Part shown: positions 37,482 to 46,374 of the stretch, one piece after another
Position numbering within the stretch: position 1 is the first letter of the stretch
Layout of the letters: every line of letters starts with the position of its first letter
Source of the DNA: Tetramitus jugosus
Lineage: Eukaryota; Protista; Heterolobosea
Direction: 5' to 3'
Assembly (NCBI GenBank): GCA_937625935.1
Contig: OW569393.1
Location: forward strand, 1 to 64,000
Length of the DNA stretch: 64,000 nt
Program-made: the position numbers and the translations under genes
Notes under the pieces: model-generated
What the model was told of the DNA's origin: nothing
The model's input: the letters and a program-made list of their open reading frames with translations, nothing else
Databases searched by the model: none

Positions 37482-37538
37482 TTTGCTTAACCAATTTTGA
37501 GGGAGCACCAGACGTTGAAATGGAACGGAAAAATAAAA

Positions 37539-40500
37539 ATGTCCGCCAGATTTGAGCTTCTCCCAATTCAACTTGTCAAAAAGGACAAGAACAAAATCCG
37601 CACAATTCTGCAGAATTCCCTCCTAGTCATGAGTCTCCATCAGGATATATTTATTGTCACAGGAGAGGTCGAAGCACCTCGGTATTACACCCCACAAGCT
37701 GTTGGTGCAGAGCTCGCACAACAACTCTTAGTAAGAGCTGAAAAGAAAGTTGCCTTCTTTGTGATTGATGCCAGTGGAAGAGAAGGTGAAGATGGCAGAG
37801 AAGGTAGAGAAGGTAAAAGAGGTGAAAGTGGAGATTCTGGCTCTAATGGTTCCAATGGTTCTCGTTCTGGAGACGATGGAAGAGACGGAAAAGATGGAAA
37901 GAATGGGCAAGATGGTGGAAGAGGTTCAGATGGTAAGAATGGTCGAGATGGAGGTGACGCAAGAAGTATGTATTTGAGGCTGTCCATGAACTCACCTCAA
38001 CAATTGTCCTTTGCTGGAAGTTACAATGGAACACTGGAAACGAGTGGTATGAGGCCAGATAGTTGTATTTTGTTGGCTGCAAGGGGAGGGAGAGGTGGAG
38101 ATGGAGGAGATGGTGGATACGGTGGTGATGGCGGAAGTGGAGGTAGGGGAGGATATGGTGGGAGAGGGGAGAGAGGTGCGAATGGAAAGAGACCTGGAGA
38201 GGATGGAGGAGATGGCGGCAATGGAGGCGATGGAGGAAGTGGAGGTGATGGTGGCAATGGAGGTGACGGTGGTAATGGAGGTGATGGAGGTAATGGTGGT
38301 CAAGGAGGAAATATCATTGTTGAGACGACACAACCCGAATTGTTGATGTTTACAGAGTGTGACATTCGCGGAGGGAGAGCAGGTGCGAGAGGTGATAGTG
38401 GCGGAGGAGGGTGTTCAGGATTTTCTGGCTCTGGTGGAAGCAGTGGAAGTGGAGGCAGTGGAGGCAGTGCTGGACCATACAAATCTGAAATCCCGAGTGG
38501 TTCGAGTGGAAGAGGCGGTAGCAGTGGAAGCAGTGGAAACTCTGGTAAAACAGGAAGTAGTGGACATCATGGAGAATGTGGTCGCAGTGGTGTTCCAGGT
38601 GAGGATGGATCTATTTGGTATGTGATCCTTGATCCAGTCACAATGCAACCTCTGGAACAATCTTCCTCAACATTCAACTGCTCTGTTTCTTCATACATGG
38701 TCCAAGGTGTGATAGACGACAACGTGTTTGAACCTGGAGAAAGAATTGTGATCAATGCAGTGGAAGTGATAAACAATGGCGGAATGACTCTTCCAGCTGG
38801 AGCATTGCTTCAATTCAACTCGACTGAAACCTTCATTTCAGAAAATATTGGTTATTATCTGCCAGCCATCAGACCAAATGAAACAATTGTTGTTCCAGCA
38901 AGTTTCTTTGGCTCTCTTCTGGAGTATCCAGAAACCACACATGCTCGCCAACTTCATGAAACAGCCAAAGTCATTTCAACAAGTCAACTTGTGGGTTGCA
39001 ACTTTGTGGACAGCACGATTGAAACATCCCTGAATGTTCAATATCCCATTCAAATTTCTGTCATGAATGGAAATGAACAGATGATCCATGGACAACAGTC
39101 GATATTTCAAGTTCAGATAAGAAACATCTCGAGTCTTCCTTATGGTAACATGTCTGGAAATGGGGATATCTCATGGAAAATCAATACAGATAGCAGATTA
39201 AATGCCATAGGATCAACAGAAGTAAGTCCACTCACAGGAAAGATTGATCTACTTGCGCCTGGTGAATCATTTATGTATAACATGGAAGTGACTGTGGATC
39301 AAAATGTTGAATTATTTGAGATATTGCCATGGAGTGTTGAACTTTCCTTCAGAAACAAGCGTATTGAAATTGCTGAAAAGAGTACCAGAATTACGCCAAG
39401 CTATGTACCAGTCGATTCTTCCAATCAACATTTGTTTGATGTGTTATTTGTTACAAACCAACACATTGCCAAACAAGAAGCCAGACTATACATGAGAATA
39501 TTCGAGGGATTGGATCTTAGAACCAATTTTTGGGACTGTGAGCAATACAATGGCTTCAGCATTGATCAGTCCACAGGTTATGTTCATCCAGTGTCGTGGA
39601 AGAATGCATTTAATGGCAAGCTCATTGTAATGCCTCTTTTCCGTCCTGATGAATTGGTGCAACTGCTGACACCGAATGATTTCATGAGTTTATTCATTGG
39701 AGAGAACTTTGAATCACCAACTTTGCTTGACACTGGTCTCGTCGTGATTGGAGCTGACTCATCTCGATTTCTATCACAATTGTTTGGCTCTGTCCCAGAG
39801 AAGCGAGTTGACCGCAGTTGCTTGTCCAGTCATTTTTTGTTGAGTGCACCATCTCGTGTGTCATTTCAGGCAAAATTGCGATCATATGTTGCCCATAAGA
39901 AAAGCCGAGACACTGCAGCTCTTTTTTCTTTGGTGAACTCCGAGTACAAACCCGTGCAATTGGACAGCTTACTGGGTACAAGATGGCAACTAGGAACTGC
40001 TGCTGTCAAAGAAATACCAATCGATTGCACCCACAAGTTCTACAATGTTGTTCCCAAATACGATTCTCAAGAGGTGTATTTGTCAATGGATAGCTTCAAT
40101 GCACATCAGATAACCCAATTCTCATTAACATCCAGGTTTGGAGCCACATTATATGCTGTGATTTGCTCTCTGAGCATTCCTGCCAAACTTAAACTCATTC
40201 ACTCTGGAGGCGGTGCTGCAAAGTTGGAGAATTGGACCTTCACTGGTATCAACAGGGAAGTCTTCTCCATTTCAGATCTTGTTGCTTATGCACTTTACAA
40301 AGATCTTCAAATTCAACTGTTTCATGGATTTATCAAGAGACAGACCCGAATTGAAGAGCTCGTCTCACAACTGAGTTCCAATCCTGAATATTTGACGCCT
40401 GAAATGGCTGCAATTGTTTTGAACGTGCTTTATCGACTGAAGAAAGAAACCAAAGTTGAATTGGTCAACATCTTCAGCAACATGTTTCATGCAGTGCAAC

Positions 40501-40778
40501 ACTTTAAAAGAAAGAGGAGAATACTGGAGGATTTATTCTCGCAATCTTTGGGAGCGTCCGTTGTCCTAAGGATTGTTGAACAGGCCAAAGAAGAAGCTAA
40601 AAAACCATTTGAATTGACGATTTATGATTTGGAACGACCCCTACTGCTCAATGATCAGAGAATAGCAGAGATTCCAGTTCCTCTCTCCGGACACTTATGG
40701 AATTGGAGTGACAGCTTCATGAACTTATTTCCTTGTCTCGGAAGAGTGGACACCACAAATTATGTCGAGCTTTCGTAG
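37539..40778 (+). CDS. Large protein with N-terminal Gly-rich (GxD/GGxG) repeats and an unknown C-terminal region
   Basis: Long open frame; GRDGKDG and GGDGGNG repeats, then DDNVFEPGERI...NNGGM. Confidence 0.8.
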   Translation: MSARFELLPIQLVKKDKNKIRTILQNSLLVMSLHQDIFIVTGEVEAPRYYTPQAVGAELAQQLLVRAEKKVAFFVIDASGREGEDGREGREGKRGESGDSGSNGSNGSRSGDDGRDGKDGKNGQDGGRGSDGKNGRDGGDARSMYLRLSMNSPQQLSFAGSYNGTLETSGMRPDSCILLAARGGRGGDGGDGGYGGDGGSGGRGGYGGRGERGANGKRPGEDGGDGGNGGDGGSGGDGGNGGDGGNGGDGGNGGQGGNIIVETTQPELLMFTECDIRGGRAGARGDSGGGGCSGFSGSGGSSGSGGSGGSAGPYKSEIPSGSSGRGGSSGSSGNSGKTGSSGHHGECGRSGVPGEDGSIWYVILDPVTMQPLEQSSSTFNCSVSSYMVQGVIDDNVFEPGERIVINAVEVINNGGMTLPAGALLQFNSTETFISENIGYYLPAIRPNETIVVPASFFGSLLEYPETTHARQLHETAKVISTSQLVGCNFVDSTIETSLNVQYPIQISVMNGNEQMIHGQQSIFQVQIRNISSLPYGNMSGNGDISWKINTDSRLNAIGSTEVSPLTGKIDLLAPGESFMYNMEVTVDQNVELFEILPWSVELSFRNKRIEIAEKSTRITPSYVPVDSSNQHLFDVLFVTNQHIAKQEARLYMRIFEGLDLRTNFWDCEQYNGFSIDQSTGYVHPVSWKNAFNGKLIVMPLFRPDELVQLLTPNDFMSLFIGENFESPTLLDTGLVVIGADSSRFLSQLFGSVPEKRVDRSCLSSHFLLSAPSRVSFQAKLRSYVAHKKSRDTAALFSLVNSEYKPVQLDSLLGTRWQLGTAAVKEIPIDCTHKFYNVVPKYDSQEVYLSMDSFNAHQITQFSLTSRFGATLYAVICSLSIPAKLKLIHSGGGAAKLENWTFTGINREVFSISDLVAYALYKDLQIQLFHGFIKRQTRIEELVSQLSSNPEYLTPEMAAIVLNVLYRLKKETKVELVNIFSNMFHAVQHFKRKRRILEDLFSQSLGASVVLRIVEQAKEEAKKPFELTIYDLERPLLLNDQRIAEIPVPLSGHLWNWSDSFMNLFPCLGRVDTTNYVELS

Positions 40779-41036
40779 ATAGAGACAAGTTTTTCTCGTT
40801 ATTTTTAAGGATGTAGTTCGTTGGACCTCAACGTATAAATAGAACTCTACCTATAAATTTTCCAGACTGCCCAAAAAAACAGGTGCACGACACCCAATCA
40901 CAAACACAAGCTTACGATCATGGTTGCCACATCTCATCAATGGTTCTGTTCCGGCTGTGGTTCCGTCTCAGCCAAGAGTATTATAATGAATACTGCCTCA
41001 TGGTTCTGCCCAGGATGCGGTCAAGTACTGGTTGAT

Positions 41037-41357
41037 TCAACAAGCAATCAAAACAGGCACAAAAAATTTCCTTTGCAATTTGCACGGTAAGCCTGACTTG
41101 CAAACGGCCAAACAGTGTGAGTACAAATTGTCCATATAAGACCTTATTGTTGATAGATTATTGACTATCGAAGATCGAAAATCCCGACACGTCAATACCA
41201 AATTCAACACATCTTCTACACCAAGGAACGAACCAACTAGATACACAAATAAATCAATATGTATATCGGTTATTCTTACTTTTCTTTTGACTCCAAACTT
41301 TACCAATTGTTGGTGTTGGTTATGTCTTCTTTTGGCGCCTTTTCCTTGTTTTCCCAT
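41037..41357 (-). CDS. Short F-box-like protein or fragment
   Basis: ITDIHIDLFVYLVGSFLGVEDVLNLVLTCRDF. Confidence 0.45.
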   Translation of the reverse strand: MGKQGKGAKRRHNQHQQLVKFGVKRKVRITDIHIDLFVYLVGSFLGVEDVLNLVLTCRDFRSSIVNNLSTIRSYMDNLYSHCLAVCKSGLPCKLQRKFFVPVLIAC

Positions 41358-41366
41358 TTGTTCATT

Positions 41367-41633
41367 GATTTTTTTCATCAAAAAAAACTTGCAAAAAACA
41401 GAAAACAAACACTCTGAAGGACATCGTGAATGCGAGTGACCTGATGATGAGTATGAGTTTTCTGACGTTTGTCAAATTCTGTCCTATTGATACCATTAGA
41501 GATTTTTTTCAAAAAAAACTTGCAAAAAACAGAAAACAAACACTCTGAAGGACATCGTGAATGCGAGTGACCTGATGATGAGTATGAGTTTTCTGACGTT
41601 TGTCAAATTCTGTCCTATTGATACCATTAGAGA
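41367..41633. repeat. Near-perfect tandem duplication, ~131-bp unit x2
   Basis: AAAAAAACTTGCAAAAAACAGAAAACAAACACTCTGAAGG...GATACCATTAGAGA at 41381 and 41512. Confidence 0.92.
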
Positions 41634-41642
41634 GGTGTTGAA

Positions 41643-42380
41643 TTGTCCGATAACTTGAGTATTCAGATCTCATTGATGACACTTGCTCTTCAAACATATC
41701 CTGATAACACTGACTATGTCAACAAGATTATTAATAACATTGCTAGTCAATTGAATAGCACTGCACTTGCTTCAGATGAAATTGTAGAGATGTTGAAGCG
41801 ATTGTTGTTGGTGCCACTCGAGTCATACAACAATGTGCTAACAGTTTTGAAGTTGGAGAAGTATGGTGATATTATTCATTCTCTTGGATATGAACAGAGA
41901 AAGTTTATTGCACTGAGCATTGTGAGATGCGAAAACTATGACACATTGTCCACAAAGACCTGCCAATACTCATCCAAGCTATTGAGGAAGCCTGATCAGT
42001 GCAGAGCTGGCTTCACTTGCTCTCATCTGTTCTGGCCGTTCGTGAATAACGAAGAGCTTCAGAACAGTTCAAAGGCACTTGAATGCTTGCAATGGTCGTT
42101 GAAGATTGTCAAGGCATGCATGCCTGCACAACAAATTCCATTGTTTGTTGACATTTTGAACGTGTACGCTTATCACTTTGACAAGGACAATGACAAGGTG
42201 ACTGCCGAGTACATTAACGGTCTCATTGATCTAATCGCTGACAATATCTCAAAGATTGAAGAAGAGGAGACTCCTGATGATGTCTTTGCACCAACCAATG
42301 TCTTCTATCGCAACACTATCAACTATTTGAGATCCAAGAAGAGGAGTGATTCTGAAAAGTATGCCGAGATTGCTATTTAA
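41643..42380 (+). pseudogene. VPS35: VPS35 (retromer) 5'-truncated, internally deleted fragment
   Basis: SLMTLALQTYPDNTDYVNKI and ENYDTLSTKTCQYSSKLLRKPDQCRA..CSHLFW...ALECLQ are Vps35 segments that are normally well apart; no ATG-initiated N-terminus. Confidence 0.8.
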
Positions 42381-42830
42381 TAGAGAATAAACTTCTTCAC
42401 TCAACAAGAGGAACAGACTCGCTCTCTCAGCACTCAACAACTTGCCAACACCAGAGATCAAATGCTGCAAAAAGACACCTCTTGTCGACTCTCCATCTTT
42501 TTTGATTGATTTGGTCGTTGTTGTTGTTGATGTTCGTTGTGCGACTTGTGTTTTTCGTTGTTGTTGTTGTCGTGTCAGAGAGAAAGTTTTTCGTTGGTTC
42601 AAGATTGGATAGATAGGTGGATATATTTTAAAAAAATACAATAAATGTTGTATCAGTTTCCTCTAAGCTGCGGAATTGGCGCAGTTGTAAAAATTTCCGT
42701 TGAGACTGTCTTTACAACGGCAACGGCCATCTTCCTCGGTTTAAAAAGCGCTGTCTTTTTCGCTGTTTGATTCAACTCACACAACAAATACAACACAACA
42801 AATACAACACACAACAAATACAATAACATT

Positions 42831-44744
42831 ATGCCACGAGGCGTGCCGAAGGACGGCAAGAGAAAGAGAAAGAGAGAGACTGTCAAAAAAAATGAATACT
42901 CATCACATTACGTGGTCAAGGTCGGTCTGAAGTCTCTGTTGTTGCATCATCCAACTCTGTTACCAATCATACAGACTCAAGCTCTGGAGATTACAAGGAT
43001 TGCTCTTCGACTCACAAGATTTATAAACATATTCGTTTTGAGGCACTTGGAGTCTGACTATCAAATCCCTTTATTAGATCAAGTGTTTCTTCAAAGATTA
43101 GGTTCTGTGTTGTTTGGACGCAATTCAAAACCAAGAGACAATAACTTAAGTCTCATCAACGAGTCTGTCAACATGGACGATGTAGTAGTCAAACTCAGAA
43201 AGATTTATCAGAGTTTTGCCACGTCCATCAATTATGTTGCCAGGTCTCTCAATGTCAACATCTCCAACATGCTCAAGTTCACATTGGAACCAAGACTGAG
43301 GAAGTATCTGAGGGTCAGAATGAATCAACTACACAGTGACTCATCTATTCCAAAGTCAGAACAAAGAAGGGTTGTTGAATACATTATCAGAAGGTTGACA
43401 TTTAGCACTCCTGTCCACGATTTTATCAAATTGCCTCCAAAAGAGTTGATAGAGACGATTCCTGTGTTGATCCGAGAGGTTCGAACACTTGTTGATGCTA
43501 AAACTGATGAAGTAATTGATGAATCATTTGTGAAGAACAACACCAATAACATGCTGAAGTTTTACTGGCATGTTCAACAATTTCTGATCAACAATGATAT
43601 GAAATCGTTTGCACTACTTCCTTTGTCTCATTTCAAGTGCAGGTGTATGGAGATTGGCACAAAGGAATTAGTTGATATGCTTAAACAGAAGAAACAAGGA
43701 AGACAAAAGAAGGGCGAGGAGTCAACTGAATTGAAGTGTAATCTCAAGTGTTTGAATGTTGGAACAAAGAAGATTCAAATCGACTCAATCAGAACTGACG
43801 GTATTCAGGCCTCTGTTGTTCTCAGACATCAACTCGTTGGCAATCACAAGAACAATAAGGCAAAGGAATCCAAGGACCAGAAAGAAGCAAAGAAGAGAAA
43901 GAAGGAAACAAGTATGAACGAAGGTGCTGAATATTTGGTTGGGATTGACCCGGGTATTGTTACGTTGGTGAGTTGTGTTGATTCAGATGGCAAGAAGTGG
44001 GAGTTGTCTAACAAAACATATAGACATCTGTCCCACCATTCGAAAAACTCCAAGCGATTGTTGAAATACAAAGCAGAATGGAACGAAATGAATGAGAAGA
44101 ACTTGGATGAACTCCAAAACTCAATCAAACAGGCCGGTGTACCAACAAGTGGTCTGTTCCTTGAACACATCAATTCTGTATTGAAAGTCGAGGATGATTT
44201 GTTGAATTTTTATTGCACCCCAAAGGTGAAGAGACTGAATTGGGATAGCTATATAATGAGAGATAAGACGATTGCCAATGTTATGAATGACTTTCGAAAG
44301 AGAGCAAATGGAAGAAGCATGTTAATTGGGATGGGCAATGCTGGTTTTGGTCATTGTTACAAAGGACATGCTCCAACACCAAAAGGAAAGCTATTGAAAA
44401 AGTTGAATGAGCACTTCAAAGTGAAAATGATCGACGAGTTCATGACAAGTCAGAAATGTCATCATTGCCATTCTCACATGAAGCCAGTCAAGCATAAGAG
44501 AATAGACAAGAATGGAACGTTGAATGTCTCTGTCGTCCGAGGAGTTAAACCGTGTGCAACCACTAAATGTTTAGTGACTCACAACAGAGACATCAATGCG
44601 GCCAAGAACATGCTCCATCTACTGAGAACAGAAATGGATGGACAGTCACGTCCCGATGCCTTCAAGAGGAAGAAAAAGGTCGCAAAAGAATTAATCAAAA
44701 TGGTGGAACACCTCCAAGGCTCACTCCATCAAGCTGCTATGTAA
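42831..44744 (+). CDS. Fanzor1: Fanzor1 (eukaryotic TnpB-like RNA-guided RuvC endonuclease), 637 aa, intact
   Basis: IRTDG (WED region), RuvC-I VGIDPG, GMGNAGFG..KGHAPTP, RuvC-II IDEFMTSQ, zinc ribbon CHHC...CATTKC, RuvC-III NRDINAAKNM; basic NLS-like termini. Confidence 0.92.
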   Translation: MPRGVPKDGKRKRKRETVKKNEYSSHYVVKVGLKSLLLHHPTLLPIIQTQALEITRIALRLTRFINIFVLRHLESDYQIPLLDQVFLQRLGSVLFGRNSKPRDNNLSLINESVNMDDVVVKLRKIYQSFATSINYVARSLNVNISNMLKFTLEPRLRKYLRVRMNQLHSDSSIPKSEQRRVVEYIIRRLTFSTPVHDFIKLPPKELIETIPVLIREVRTLVDAKTDEVIDESFVKNNTNNMLKFYWHVQQFLINNDMKSFALLPLSHFKCRCMEIGTKELVDMLKQKKQGRQKKGEESTELKCNLKCLNVGTKKIQIDSIRTDGIQASVVLRHQLVGNHKNNKAKESKDQKEAKKRKKETSMNEGAEYLVGIDPGIVTLVSCVDSDGKKWELSNKTYRHLSHHSKNSKRLLKYKAEWNEMNEKNLDELQNSIKQAGVPTSGLFLEHINSVLKVEDDLLNFYCTPKVKRLNWDSYIMRDKTIANVMNDFRKRANGRSMLIGMGNAGFGHCYKGHAPTPKGKLLKKLNEHFKVKMIDEFMTSQKCHHCHSHMKPVKHKRIDKNGTLNVSVVRGVKPCATTKCLVTHNRDINAAKNMLHLLRTEMDGQSRPDAFKRKKKVAKELIKMVEHLQGSLHQAAM

Positions 44745-44855
44745 GTCCCGATTATGTAGGAGCGTTAAGGTGTCTTCTCGGGAAATCATAATTTTTTTAT
44801 TATGGGTTTTATTTCACCGAACTACATCCTTAAGCGGATAAACGTTGGAACTGAT
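44745..44855 (+). ncRNA. Candidate Fanzor omega-RNA scaffold / element right end
   Basis: Pairings visible by eye: ATGTAG 44754/CTACAT 44822, GGTG 44769/CACC 44815, CATAAT 44787/ATTATG 44799, ATCC 44826/GGAT 44836, and a crossing pair AGCGTT 44761/AACGTT 44841; lies immediately 3' of the Fanzor stop. Confidence 0.6.
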
Positions 44856-44889
44856 CATGGAGTTCCATCTCAGCAGAAAAGAAGAAAGA

Positions 44890-46374
44890 ATGTTTCGTCA
44901 GGCGTTGAGATGCATTCCCAAGCATTTGGTCATTAGATCCAATGTACCCAATAGAGGTGCCATGTTGGCCAATAAGACCCTTGTTGAAATGTCCAGACAA
45001 GCATCCTTCTGCACTGAAACTGTGAAACATGCTTCTGTTGTTGAGTCTTCTCATACGCCTCCGAAAGCACAAGATACGTCAAACACAAAGAAGAATAGTC
45101 ATGTGGCCAAGGCCTTCGAACGCATCAACTTGTTGTGCGATAAGGATACGTTCACTCATCAGGAGGTGTCTACATCAGAGAACGGAGAGGATTTTGGTAT
45201 TACCGACCAAGCTCTGATCCGTGGCCGATCTGTACAGATCCTTTACCTTTCAGTGGCTGGGAACAGTTTGTCCGAGGTACACATCCAACAACTAGAAAGT
45301 GCTTTCCAGGCTGCAGGATTCTTCAGAACACCTGTTGTTGGCATTTATGATTTTCGATGCCAGAGTATTCAAAAAGGCAAAATCTCTCCGGGTGGAATCT
45401 CGAACATTTTTCAAAGAAATGCGTGGTTCTCTGGCTTCGCACCTCAAATTTCTTTGATATTTGGTCCATCCTTAGGTGCTGTTTTCAGTCTGTATGCTTC
45501 AGATTTTATCTTCATGGTAAAGAATGGCTATGATACTTCTAAGTTTAAGCCAGGCATAGCACATTCGACATTCGAGCAGGATGTAGACTGCTTGAAGAGT
45601 ATCAGAGAGTTTATCCACTTTTTGCCATTGTCAAGAAAGGAGATGTCACCCATCATTGAAAATTCTGACCCAACAACAAGAGGTGATGACGCTCTGAATT
45701 CTATTATTTCTCTAGATCCCAATACTGCATACAATATGAAGAATATTATCAGATCGATTGTAGATGATGAAAACTTCTGTGAACTAATGCCAGATCATGC
45801 CAGGAATATCCTTACTGGTTTTGCTCGCATGAATGGACAGGTTGTAGCAATTGTCGCGAATCAGCCTTGTGAGACTGCAGGAATTTTCGACTACGATTCC
45901 AGTGCTAAGGCTGCCAAATTCGTCAGATTTGCAAACACATTCAATATACCAATACTAACCTTTGTGGACGTACCTGGACTCTTGTATGAGGAAGATGATG
46001 TCCCTCGAAAAGGCGGGGAGCTCTTATTTGAGTATGTGAATGCTACTGTTCCAAGGATTACCATTGTTACCAGGAAGGCACATGATGACGCTTATGATGT
46101 CATTTCTTCGGAATACTTGATAGGTAAATTCAATTACTCGTGGGCGATGACTTCGAGGAAGGACACGGCTGATGTTAGTCAAGAAACCAAGTCTATTTAT
46201 CACAGTATCGAACCTTCTGCAACCAGACAACGTATATGCGAAGATTTGGAATCGTTAAAGACAAGAGAACCTGATCAACCCAGACCCTTAACCTGGAAAG
46301 AGGTGGTATGGGCTGTAAGAAATTTGTTATTGATACTCTTCTCTTTGTTCATACTTATTCGTTATGTTTGTTAA
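44890..46374 (+). CDS. Divergent propionyl-CoA carboxylase beta-like carboxyltransferase with a C-terminal hydrophobic tail
   Basis: ERINLLCD, PQISLIFGP, DFIFMVK, ARNILTGFARMNGQVVAIVANQP, KAAKFVRF, LTFVDVPG, VPRITIVTRKA; the usual GGARIQEG and YGGAY motifs are degenerate. Confidence 0.8.
   Translation: MFRQALRCIPKHLVIRSNVPNRGAMLANKTLVEMSRQASFCTETVKHASVVESSHTPPKAQDTSNTKKNSHVAKAFERINLLCDKDTFTHQEVSTSENGEDFGITDQALIRGRSVQILYLSVAGNSLSEVHIQQLESAFQAAGFFRTPVVGIYDFRCQSIQKGKISPGGISNIFQRNAWFSGFAPQISLIFGPSLGAVFSLYASDFIFMVKNGYDTSKFKPGIAHSTFEQDVDCLKSIREFIHFLPLSRKEMSPIIENSDPTTRGDDALNSIISLDPNTAYNMKNIIRSIVDDENFCELMPDHARNILTGFARMNGQVVAIVANQPCETAGIFDYDSSAKAAKFVRFANTFNIPILTFVDVPGLLYEEDDVPRKGGELLFEYVNATVPRITIVTRKAHDDAYDVISSEYLIGKFNYSWAMTSRKDTADVSQETKSIYHSIEPSATRQRICEDLESLKTREPDQPRPLTWKEVVWAVRNLLLILFSLFILIRYVC

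Follow-up and report, generated by a model that had tools for sequence, protein, structure and literature searches.

The right end of a Fanzor1-bearing transposon of Tetramitus jugosus is likely to encode a Fanzor1 omega-RNA scaffold of ~100-108 nt, which ends at position 44833, is followed by a guide starting at 44834 and works with (W)TTAA as the TAM. We infer that an RNA with these ends exists, is bound by the protein and guides cleavage. All positions refer to the window, i.e. the whole stretch of 64,000 nt analysed here, and the features are collected in Table 1. An earlier note on this DNA had proposed a different omega-RNA at 44745-44875, closed by a terminal pseudoknot; it was right in kind and wrong in detail, the complementary words that it named being real and the structure built from them not.

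Table 1 Features of the element and of its right end (positions in the window)
Feature	Position	Strand	Remarks
Left terminal inverted repeat (TIR)	40805-40820	+	16 nt including TTAA 40805-40808
Intact Fanzor1 (TnpB-like) ORF	42831-44744	+	637 aa; Pfam, phmmer, alignment A1
Predicted omega-RNA scaffold	44726-44833	+	span matched by covariance model R1; 5′ end approximate
Stem-loop 1 (SL1)	44733-44763	+	lower stem 44733-35/44761-63; upper stem 44737-44/44752-59; 7-nt loop 44745-51
Linker	44764		one unpaired base between SL1 and stem 2
Stem 2 base, 5′ strand (UUAAGGUGU)	44765-44773	+	pairs with 44824-26 and 44828-33 in MFE and centroid folds
UCGGGA, candidate partner of SL1 loop UCCCGA (44746-51)	44778-44783	+	would form an H-type pseudoknot; tentative
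Distal hairpin of stem 2	44786-44805	+	7 bp, U6 loop
Right TIR	44818-44833	+	TTAA 44830-33 is the 3′ target-site duplication (TSD) copy and the last scaffold bases
Stem 2, 3′ strand	44826-44833	+	inside right TIR
Predicted native guide	44834-44852	+	unique flank; ~40-55 nt upstream of the likely start codon of the carboxyltransferase-like ORF
ATGTAG/CTACAT	44754-59/44822-27		long stem of the earlier note
GGTG/CACC	44769-72/44815-18		second part of that long stem
CATAAT/ATTATG	44787-92/44799-804		enclosed hairpin of the earlier note
ATCC/GGAT	44826-29/44836-39		following hairpin of the earlier note
AGCGTT/AACGTT	44761-66/44841-46		pseudoknot of the earlier note
TCCCGA/TCGGGA	44746-51/44778-83		alternative pair of the earlier note

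Fanzor1 gene and transposon ends

The marks of a Fanzor protein are an RuvC triad of the TnpB type (D...E...RD) and, in its C-terminal half, a C4 zinc finger (Bao and Jurka 2013, PMC3627910). Both are found in the product of ORF 42831-44744, which carries a Pfam Cas12f1-like TNB domain (E 1e-9; 38.9 bits against a cutoff of 26.3) and has the SpuFz1 structure 8GKH as its nearest solved relative (phmmer, E 4e-13). Its RuvC motifs GIDPG, DEFMTSQ and NRD align with those of 8GKH, and residues D373, E536, R586-D587, C543, C546, C575 and C580 are invariant among the ORF and its relatives (alignment A1).

The ORF is surrounded in the window by ordinary eukaryotic genes. The gene upstream of the element (37497-40778) has 87%-identical paralogues on contigs C49 and C50, and the carboxyltransferase-like gene downstream (44834-46374), from whose likely start codon the element is ~35-60 nt away on the upstream side, has a 79%-identical paralogue at G000:C49:302375-303979. 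At the contig start (1-240) a C run of ~120 nt is followed by CCCAA/CCCAAA repeats, which look like a telomere or an assembly end, so the window may be subtelomeric.

The whole element extends from 40805 to 44833 (~4 kb); TTAA bounds it on either side, and its termini are GG...CC. The left TIR is the exact reverse complement of 44818-44833; its TTAA (40805-40808) is the 5′ copy of the TSD and the core of the predicted TAM, and is preceded by T (base -1, 40804). The same left terminus is present in nine other copies, outside of which the flanks are unrelated. More than 30 sibling copies, about 24 of them intact, reside in the same genome, where two types of TIR occur: type A, that of the copy in the window, at 21 sites, and type B at 44 sites, many of which are minimal elements of 2.67 kb. 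TTAA is found at both ends of all paired copies, and both TIR types have the arrangement TTAA-GG...CC-TTAA, which agrees with 5′-RR...YY-3′ termini. It is the TTAA duplication and such termini that characterize Kolobok transposons and set them apart from piggyBac (PMC9587614). Judged from sequence, the element ends are of the Kolobok type, the superfamily being placed from the ends alone. A Kolobok transposon encodes, or is mobilised by, a DDD/E transposase. No transposase of this or another kind was found in the copies examined here: a transposase domain was absent from the element ORFs scanned and from the TIR-bearing loci L043, L045 and L046, which were therefore rejected as candidates for an autonomous partner. 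A search of the genome at up to one mismatch found no longer element with the two TIR types.

The left half of the element contains, as cargo, an open C-terminal fragment of Vps35 (41643-42380; Pfam E 6e-51). The part 41503-41931 is common to most copies, and a 533-nt piece (41932-42464), present only in L001, L005, L009 and L025, matches C22:84173-84625 at 100% identity, a locus that may be the source gene. The fragment is a host-gene capture by a Fanzor transposon. A tandem duplication of 133 nt (98.5% identity) lies at 41370-41633, also in the left half, and its repeat number varies among copies.

Two-stem fold of the right-end module

Segment 44726-44833 folds at -28.4 kcal/mol (z = -2.75), a value equalled by 3 of 200 shuffles. 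SL1, which contains the stop codon (44742-44), is followed after the linker by stem 2, in which UUAAGG (44765-70) pairs with the terminal CCUUAA (44828-33), extended by UGU with ACA (44824-26). The segment has the layout described for Fanzor1 scaffolds, namely a 5′ stem-loop and a second stem closing beside the guide, with no 3′ pseudoknot (PMC10432273, PMC11423790). In the omega-RNA of Fanzor1 SL1 has exactly seven base pairs (Xu 2024, PMC11423790); the upper SL1 stem has 8 bp in the window, 7 in L039, 6 in L030 and 5 in both L041 and L043, the last two loci fitting SL1 only with a shifted register or a shorter hairpin. When seven lineages were folded separately by MFE, with no model imposed, each of them yielded SL1, and five also the closing stem UUAAGG/CCUUAA.

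Under the two-stem model 93.6% of the cells in MAFFT alignment A2 are paired; sliding the partners lowers this to 33-51%. SL1 is paired in 92.7% of cells, with compensatory double changes in 6 of its 11 pairs; these six are all the compensatory pairs of the model, against 1.3 ± 1.0 in shuffles (0/500), in a test that comprises ~5-6 independent lineages and a structure derived from the same sequences. The distal hairpin is paired in 95% of cells, with one-sided U-G/C-G and A-U/G-U changes. A search of Rfam returned only a sub-threshold chance match to a snoRNA. Covariance model R1 found 35 matches in the genome, all of full length, all ending at a right-end TTAA and none at a left end; the internal GTTAAGG motif was likewise absent from 22 of 22 verified left ends.

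The conserved 3′ module might also be read as DNA-level machinery only, composed of the inverted repeat and subterminal transposase-binding sites, in which case TTAAGG would simply repeat the terminus and a functional RNA would not be made. The internal TTAAGG(TG) is indeed identical to the left TIR over its first 6-10 nt; the UUAAGG/CCUUAA pairing, present in 20 of 20 modules, is invariant, hence without covariation in its six pairs, and overlaps the DNA-constrained TIR, which transposition needs conserved in any case. We nevertheless hold this explanation to be improbable. Subterminal sites are normally present at both ends, whereas the R1 module and GTTAAGG are confined to the right one, which argues against plain transposase sites, and the compensatory changes in SL1 point to a paired strand rather than to a protein-binding word.

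It is more doubtful still whether the structures belong merely to the Fanzor mRNA, as a stop-codon hairpin and a 3′-UTR stem serving termination, stability or 3′-end formation. The stop codon does lie within SL1, and RNA-library contigs span the 3′ end of the ORF and the tail contiguously: contigs of four soil metatranscriptomes cover 44480-44833, some crossing 44833 into other flanks and others beginning near 44710 with unrelated sequence before. Being assembled contigs, these give neither ends nor strand nor interpretable depth, and may include DNA; they would fit transcription that runs through the right end, and would fit solo modules as well. An mRNA role, however, leaves unexplained why the structure stops precisely where the transposon does, the TSD being paired, and why flank repeats are anchored at TTAA (see below). 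The stop codon is placed elsewhere relative to SL1 in other lineages, falling inside GTTAAGG in L039 and L043, and the equivalent layout is an omega-RNA in SpuFz1.

An omega-RNA scaffold with two stems, which we prefer, may contain a further contact. The SL1 loop could pair with the 5′ side of stem 2 (UCCCGA/UCGGGA) and form an H-type pseudoknot, a tentative proposal that takes up the alternative pair of the earlier note. In its favour, a G-C to A-U compensatory change is seen in L030 and L039, and in the family of the window the duplex is better than shuffles at a level of about 0.5-1%, with L039 marginal; in L041 and L043 comparison with shuffles gave no support. The same bases can alternatively extend stem 2.

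Predicted scaffold boundary, guide and TAM

Thirty sibling loci share their sequence as far as ...CCTTAA (44828-44833) and are unrelated beyond it; the same holds for L039 and L041, which derive from other samples. The guide is placed from 44834 because conservation ends at 44833; known Fz1 guides are of 14-20 nt and lie directly past the scaffold.

This boundary bears heavily on the structure drawn by the earlier note. All the words that it paired are present, at or within 1 nt of the places given for them, but chance alone should give ~2 six-nt complementary pairs in a stretch of 131 nt (by arithmetic), and the interval 44745-44875 as a whole folds at -31.4 kcal/mol with z = -1.27 (19 of 200 dinucleotide shuffles as good), which is not above chance. 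In its long stem, ATGTAG/CTACAT pairs in 53% and GGTG/CACC in 76% of cells among 20 distinct modules, and by no measure do they exceed shuffles; the CTACAT arm is part of the type A right TIR only, and the stem does not form in type B copies, L039 or L041. Both GGAT (44836-39) and AACGTT (44841-46) are unique flank, different in every copy, and therefore neither the ATCC/GGAT hairpin nor the AGCGTT/AACGTT pseudoknot is a feature of the scaffold. Of the words named, only two pairs hold: the CATAAT/ATTATG hairpin, paired in 95% of cells across modules, and the alternative pair TCCCGA/TCGGGA, the latter tentatively. The premise that an omega-RNA closes with a pseudoknot is contradicted for Fanzor1 (Saito 2023, PMC10432273; 2026 review, PMC13565253). 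That the long stem, the ATCC/GGAT hairpin and the pseudoknot form one scaffold ending at 44846-44855, with the guide after it, is consequently scarcely credible: its complementary words exist in this one copy, and the sibling alignment, different in every copy from 44834 onward, refutes it.

Two checks that the earlier note had proposed were made here. Alignment of the 3′ flanks of sibling copies does reveal a sharp loss of conservation, at 44833 and not at the proposed end, which puts the start of the guide 13-22 bases earlier; covariance modelling of the two-stem fold yields 35 modules, all at right ends. A construct made on the former coordinates would include 13-22 nt of host DNA in its 'scaffold' and have a wrong guide. 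The general idea of the earlier note, an omega-RNA derived from the right end of the element and using the flank as guide, is supported by the Fanzor1 ORF, the right-end-specific structured module, the drop of conservation and the TTAA-anchored repeats.

The latter were found in 2 of the 6 5′-truncated copies tested (L113 and L116). In L113 a 15-bp word, TTAA with the first 11 bases of the flank, stands on either side of the element's last 385 nt; in L116 the remaining 118 nt of the right end are enclosed by copies of TTAA with 19 bases (~23 bp, 2 mismatches). The other four truncated copies tested had no TTAA-anchored repeat. Such repeats are the expected remnant of a cut 11-19 nt past TTAA at an empty site, with the element partly copied back. 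The upstream TTAA and flank in L113 and L116 have no adjoining TIR, which indicates that this TTAA belongs to the host target. A module acting only at the DNA level does not account for these repeats, which require cleavage 11-19 nt into the flank.

Immediately before the left TTAA, 21 of 22 insertions have A or T, whereas 15 of 34 have G or C immediately after the right TTAA (Fisher p = 0.002, calculated post hoc from small numbers). With identical TIRs, a transposase would be expected to show symmetrical preferences; the flanks are asymmetric instead. In SpuFz1, CA upstream of the left IR completes the CATA TAM (PMC10432273), and there is Fanzor1 precedent for a 3′ TSD inside the scaffold and a 5′ TSD as part of the TAM. 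The left-only constraint, which recalls the CA of SpuFz1, leads us to predict by analogy that the TAM is probably W-TTAA, near the 5′-TTAAN measured for GtFz1 (PMC10432273, PMC11423790).

Probable exchange among copies

The type A end is native to a second, divergent Fanzor family (41-45% protein identity), represented on contig C32 by L043 (G000:C32:2808-4989). This is a 2.18-kb element with type A ends, in which the gene is split into two ORFs (370 and 310 aa), the stop codon falls within GTTAAGG, and a hairpin of 5 bp closed by a GCGA tetraloop is the equivalent of SL1. The copy in the window is therefore a chimera, with gene and 3′ region of the B family and the last ~27 nt of the A family, so that its scaffold too is chimeric and may not be competent.

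A block at 44540-44806, covering the last ~205 nt of the ORF and 62 nt of 3′ sequence (compared with L017, L022 and L027-L029), is 99-100% identical among copies that are only 50-85% identical elsewhere in the ORF. The block suggested an omega-RNA that extends ~200 nt into the ORF, a reading that was rejected because L039 and L041, which come from other samples, show no extra synonymous-site conservation across 44540-44806. Recombination or homogenisation among subfamilies, in which C-terminus and scaffold move as one module, accounts better for the block. Other blocks (e.g. from 43806 onward in L010 and L011) alternate between ~80% and ~99% identity; recombination between copies appears frequent and the family a mosaic.

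The sample was widened by a word-based protein search, which gave five matches, and by a metagenome scan, which gave only copies of the elements of this same genome. Two relatives from a JGI metagenome with 61-62% protein identity (L040, 4522-4560; L042, 3863-3900) were left out of the comparison on account of a different, non-TTAA tail. They share only ~35 nt past the stop, including an AGGATT/AATCCT hairpin with one G-U change, and then diverge with no TTAA end, which looks like the same Fanzor clade on a different transposon end.

Locus L046 (154-260; G000:C10:247203-247309, minus strand) holds a solo 109-nt module that starts just 5′ of SL1. There is no Fanzor gene nearby and no source locus was found for it. 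The module is bracketed by a 6-9-bp word recurring 19 nt past its TTAA, and could stem from microhomology repair or be a retro-copy of an omega-RNA with a ~15-nt guide.

Relation to characterized Fanzor and TnpB RNAs

SpuFz1 of Spizellomyces punctatus (Saito et al. 2023, PMC10432273; 8GKH) resembles the present system in having two stems joined by a linker, stem 2 closing beside the guide, last scaffold bases that are the 3′ copy of the TSD and no 3′ pseudoknot; its element also has TIRs and no transposase, with extra conserved bases, on the left side only, that add to the TAM. The two RNAs, however, have no sequence similarity, and the duplication is TTAA here and TA there. Here SL1 overlaps the stop codon and is longer (8+3 bp, compared with 7 bp in SpuFz1), whereas the linker has 1 nt in the MFE fold where SpuFz1 has 6 nt; the scaffold measures ~100-108 nt, that of SpuFz1 75 nt. 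The possible pairing of the SL1 loop has no counterpart in SpuFz1.

GtFz1 of Guillardia theta (PMC10432273, PMC11423790) is similar in its 5′-TTAAN TAM and in an omega-RNA that overlaps the end of the ORF, but its RNA is of 150 nt with four stem-loops and its locus has been reported as lacking IRs; phmmer detected no protein similarity between GtFz1 and ORF 42831-44744. PpFz1 of Parasitella parasitica (Xu et al. 2024, PMC11423790) has a small scaffold of two stem-loops, in which a hairpin of 7 bp with a 6-nt loop matches the geometry of the distal hairpin here. That hairpin is SL1 at the 5′ end in PpFz1, whereas here it lies inside stem 2, and the TAM of PpFz1 is ATN. Homology to PpFz1 was rejected, there being no protein similarity even at E 10, and the comparison concerns RNA geometry alone.

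The omega-RNA (reRNA) of TnpB from IS200/IS605 elements such as ISDra2 shares with the predicted RNA the right-end scaffold, the guide taken from the flank and the TAM in the left flank, and its restorative homing after excision is the role proposed here. It differs as a bacterial RNA with a 3′ pseudoknot that overlaps much more of the ORF, borne on elements which have neither TIRs nor TSD and use a Y1 transposase.

Possible role at emptied sites

In the mechanism that we propose, transcription would run through the right inverted repeat into host DNA, and the Fanzor protein would bind SL1, which lies over the stop codon, and stem 2, closed by UUAAGG and the terminal CCUUAA that includes the 3′ TTAA copy of the duplication. 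The next ~11-20 nt from 44834 would serve as the guide. The target would be the empty site left after excision, i.e. the left flank, a single TTAA and the right flank, with TTAA as the core of the TAM, probably W-TTAA. Cleavage of the empty site would then lead to the element being copied back from a sister or homologous copy.

Bacterial TnpB and IscB have been shown to carry out restorative homing, which has been demonstrated for no Fanzor (review, PMC13565253). That the present family provides natural in-genome evidence of restorative homing by a Fanzor1, which would cut 11-19 nt downstream of W-TTAA at emptied sites of a Kolobok-type cut-and-paste transposon, and in addition an omega-RNA with an H-type pseudoknot absent from solved Fanzor1 RNAs, is a possibility that we put forward with considerable reserve.

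The family described here bears on the role of Fanzor proteins in their own hosts. It is young and multi-copy, with sharp ends, a TTAA target, a compact predicted scaffold with a defined guide start, and footprint-like repeats, and it offers testable predictions within one organism: the ends of the RNA, a W-TTAA TAM and a cut 11-19 nt from the TAM.
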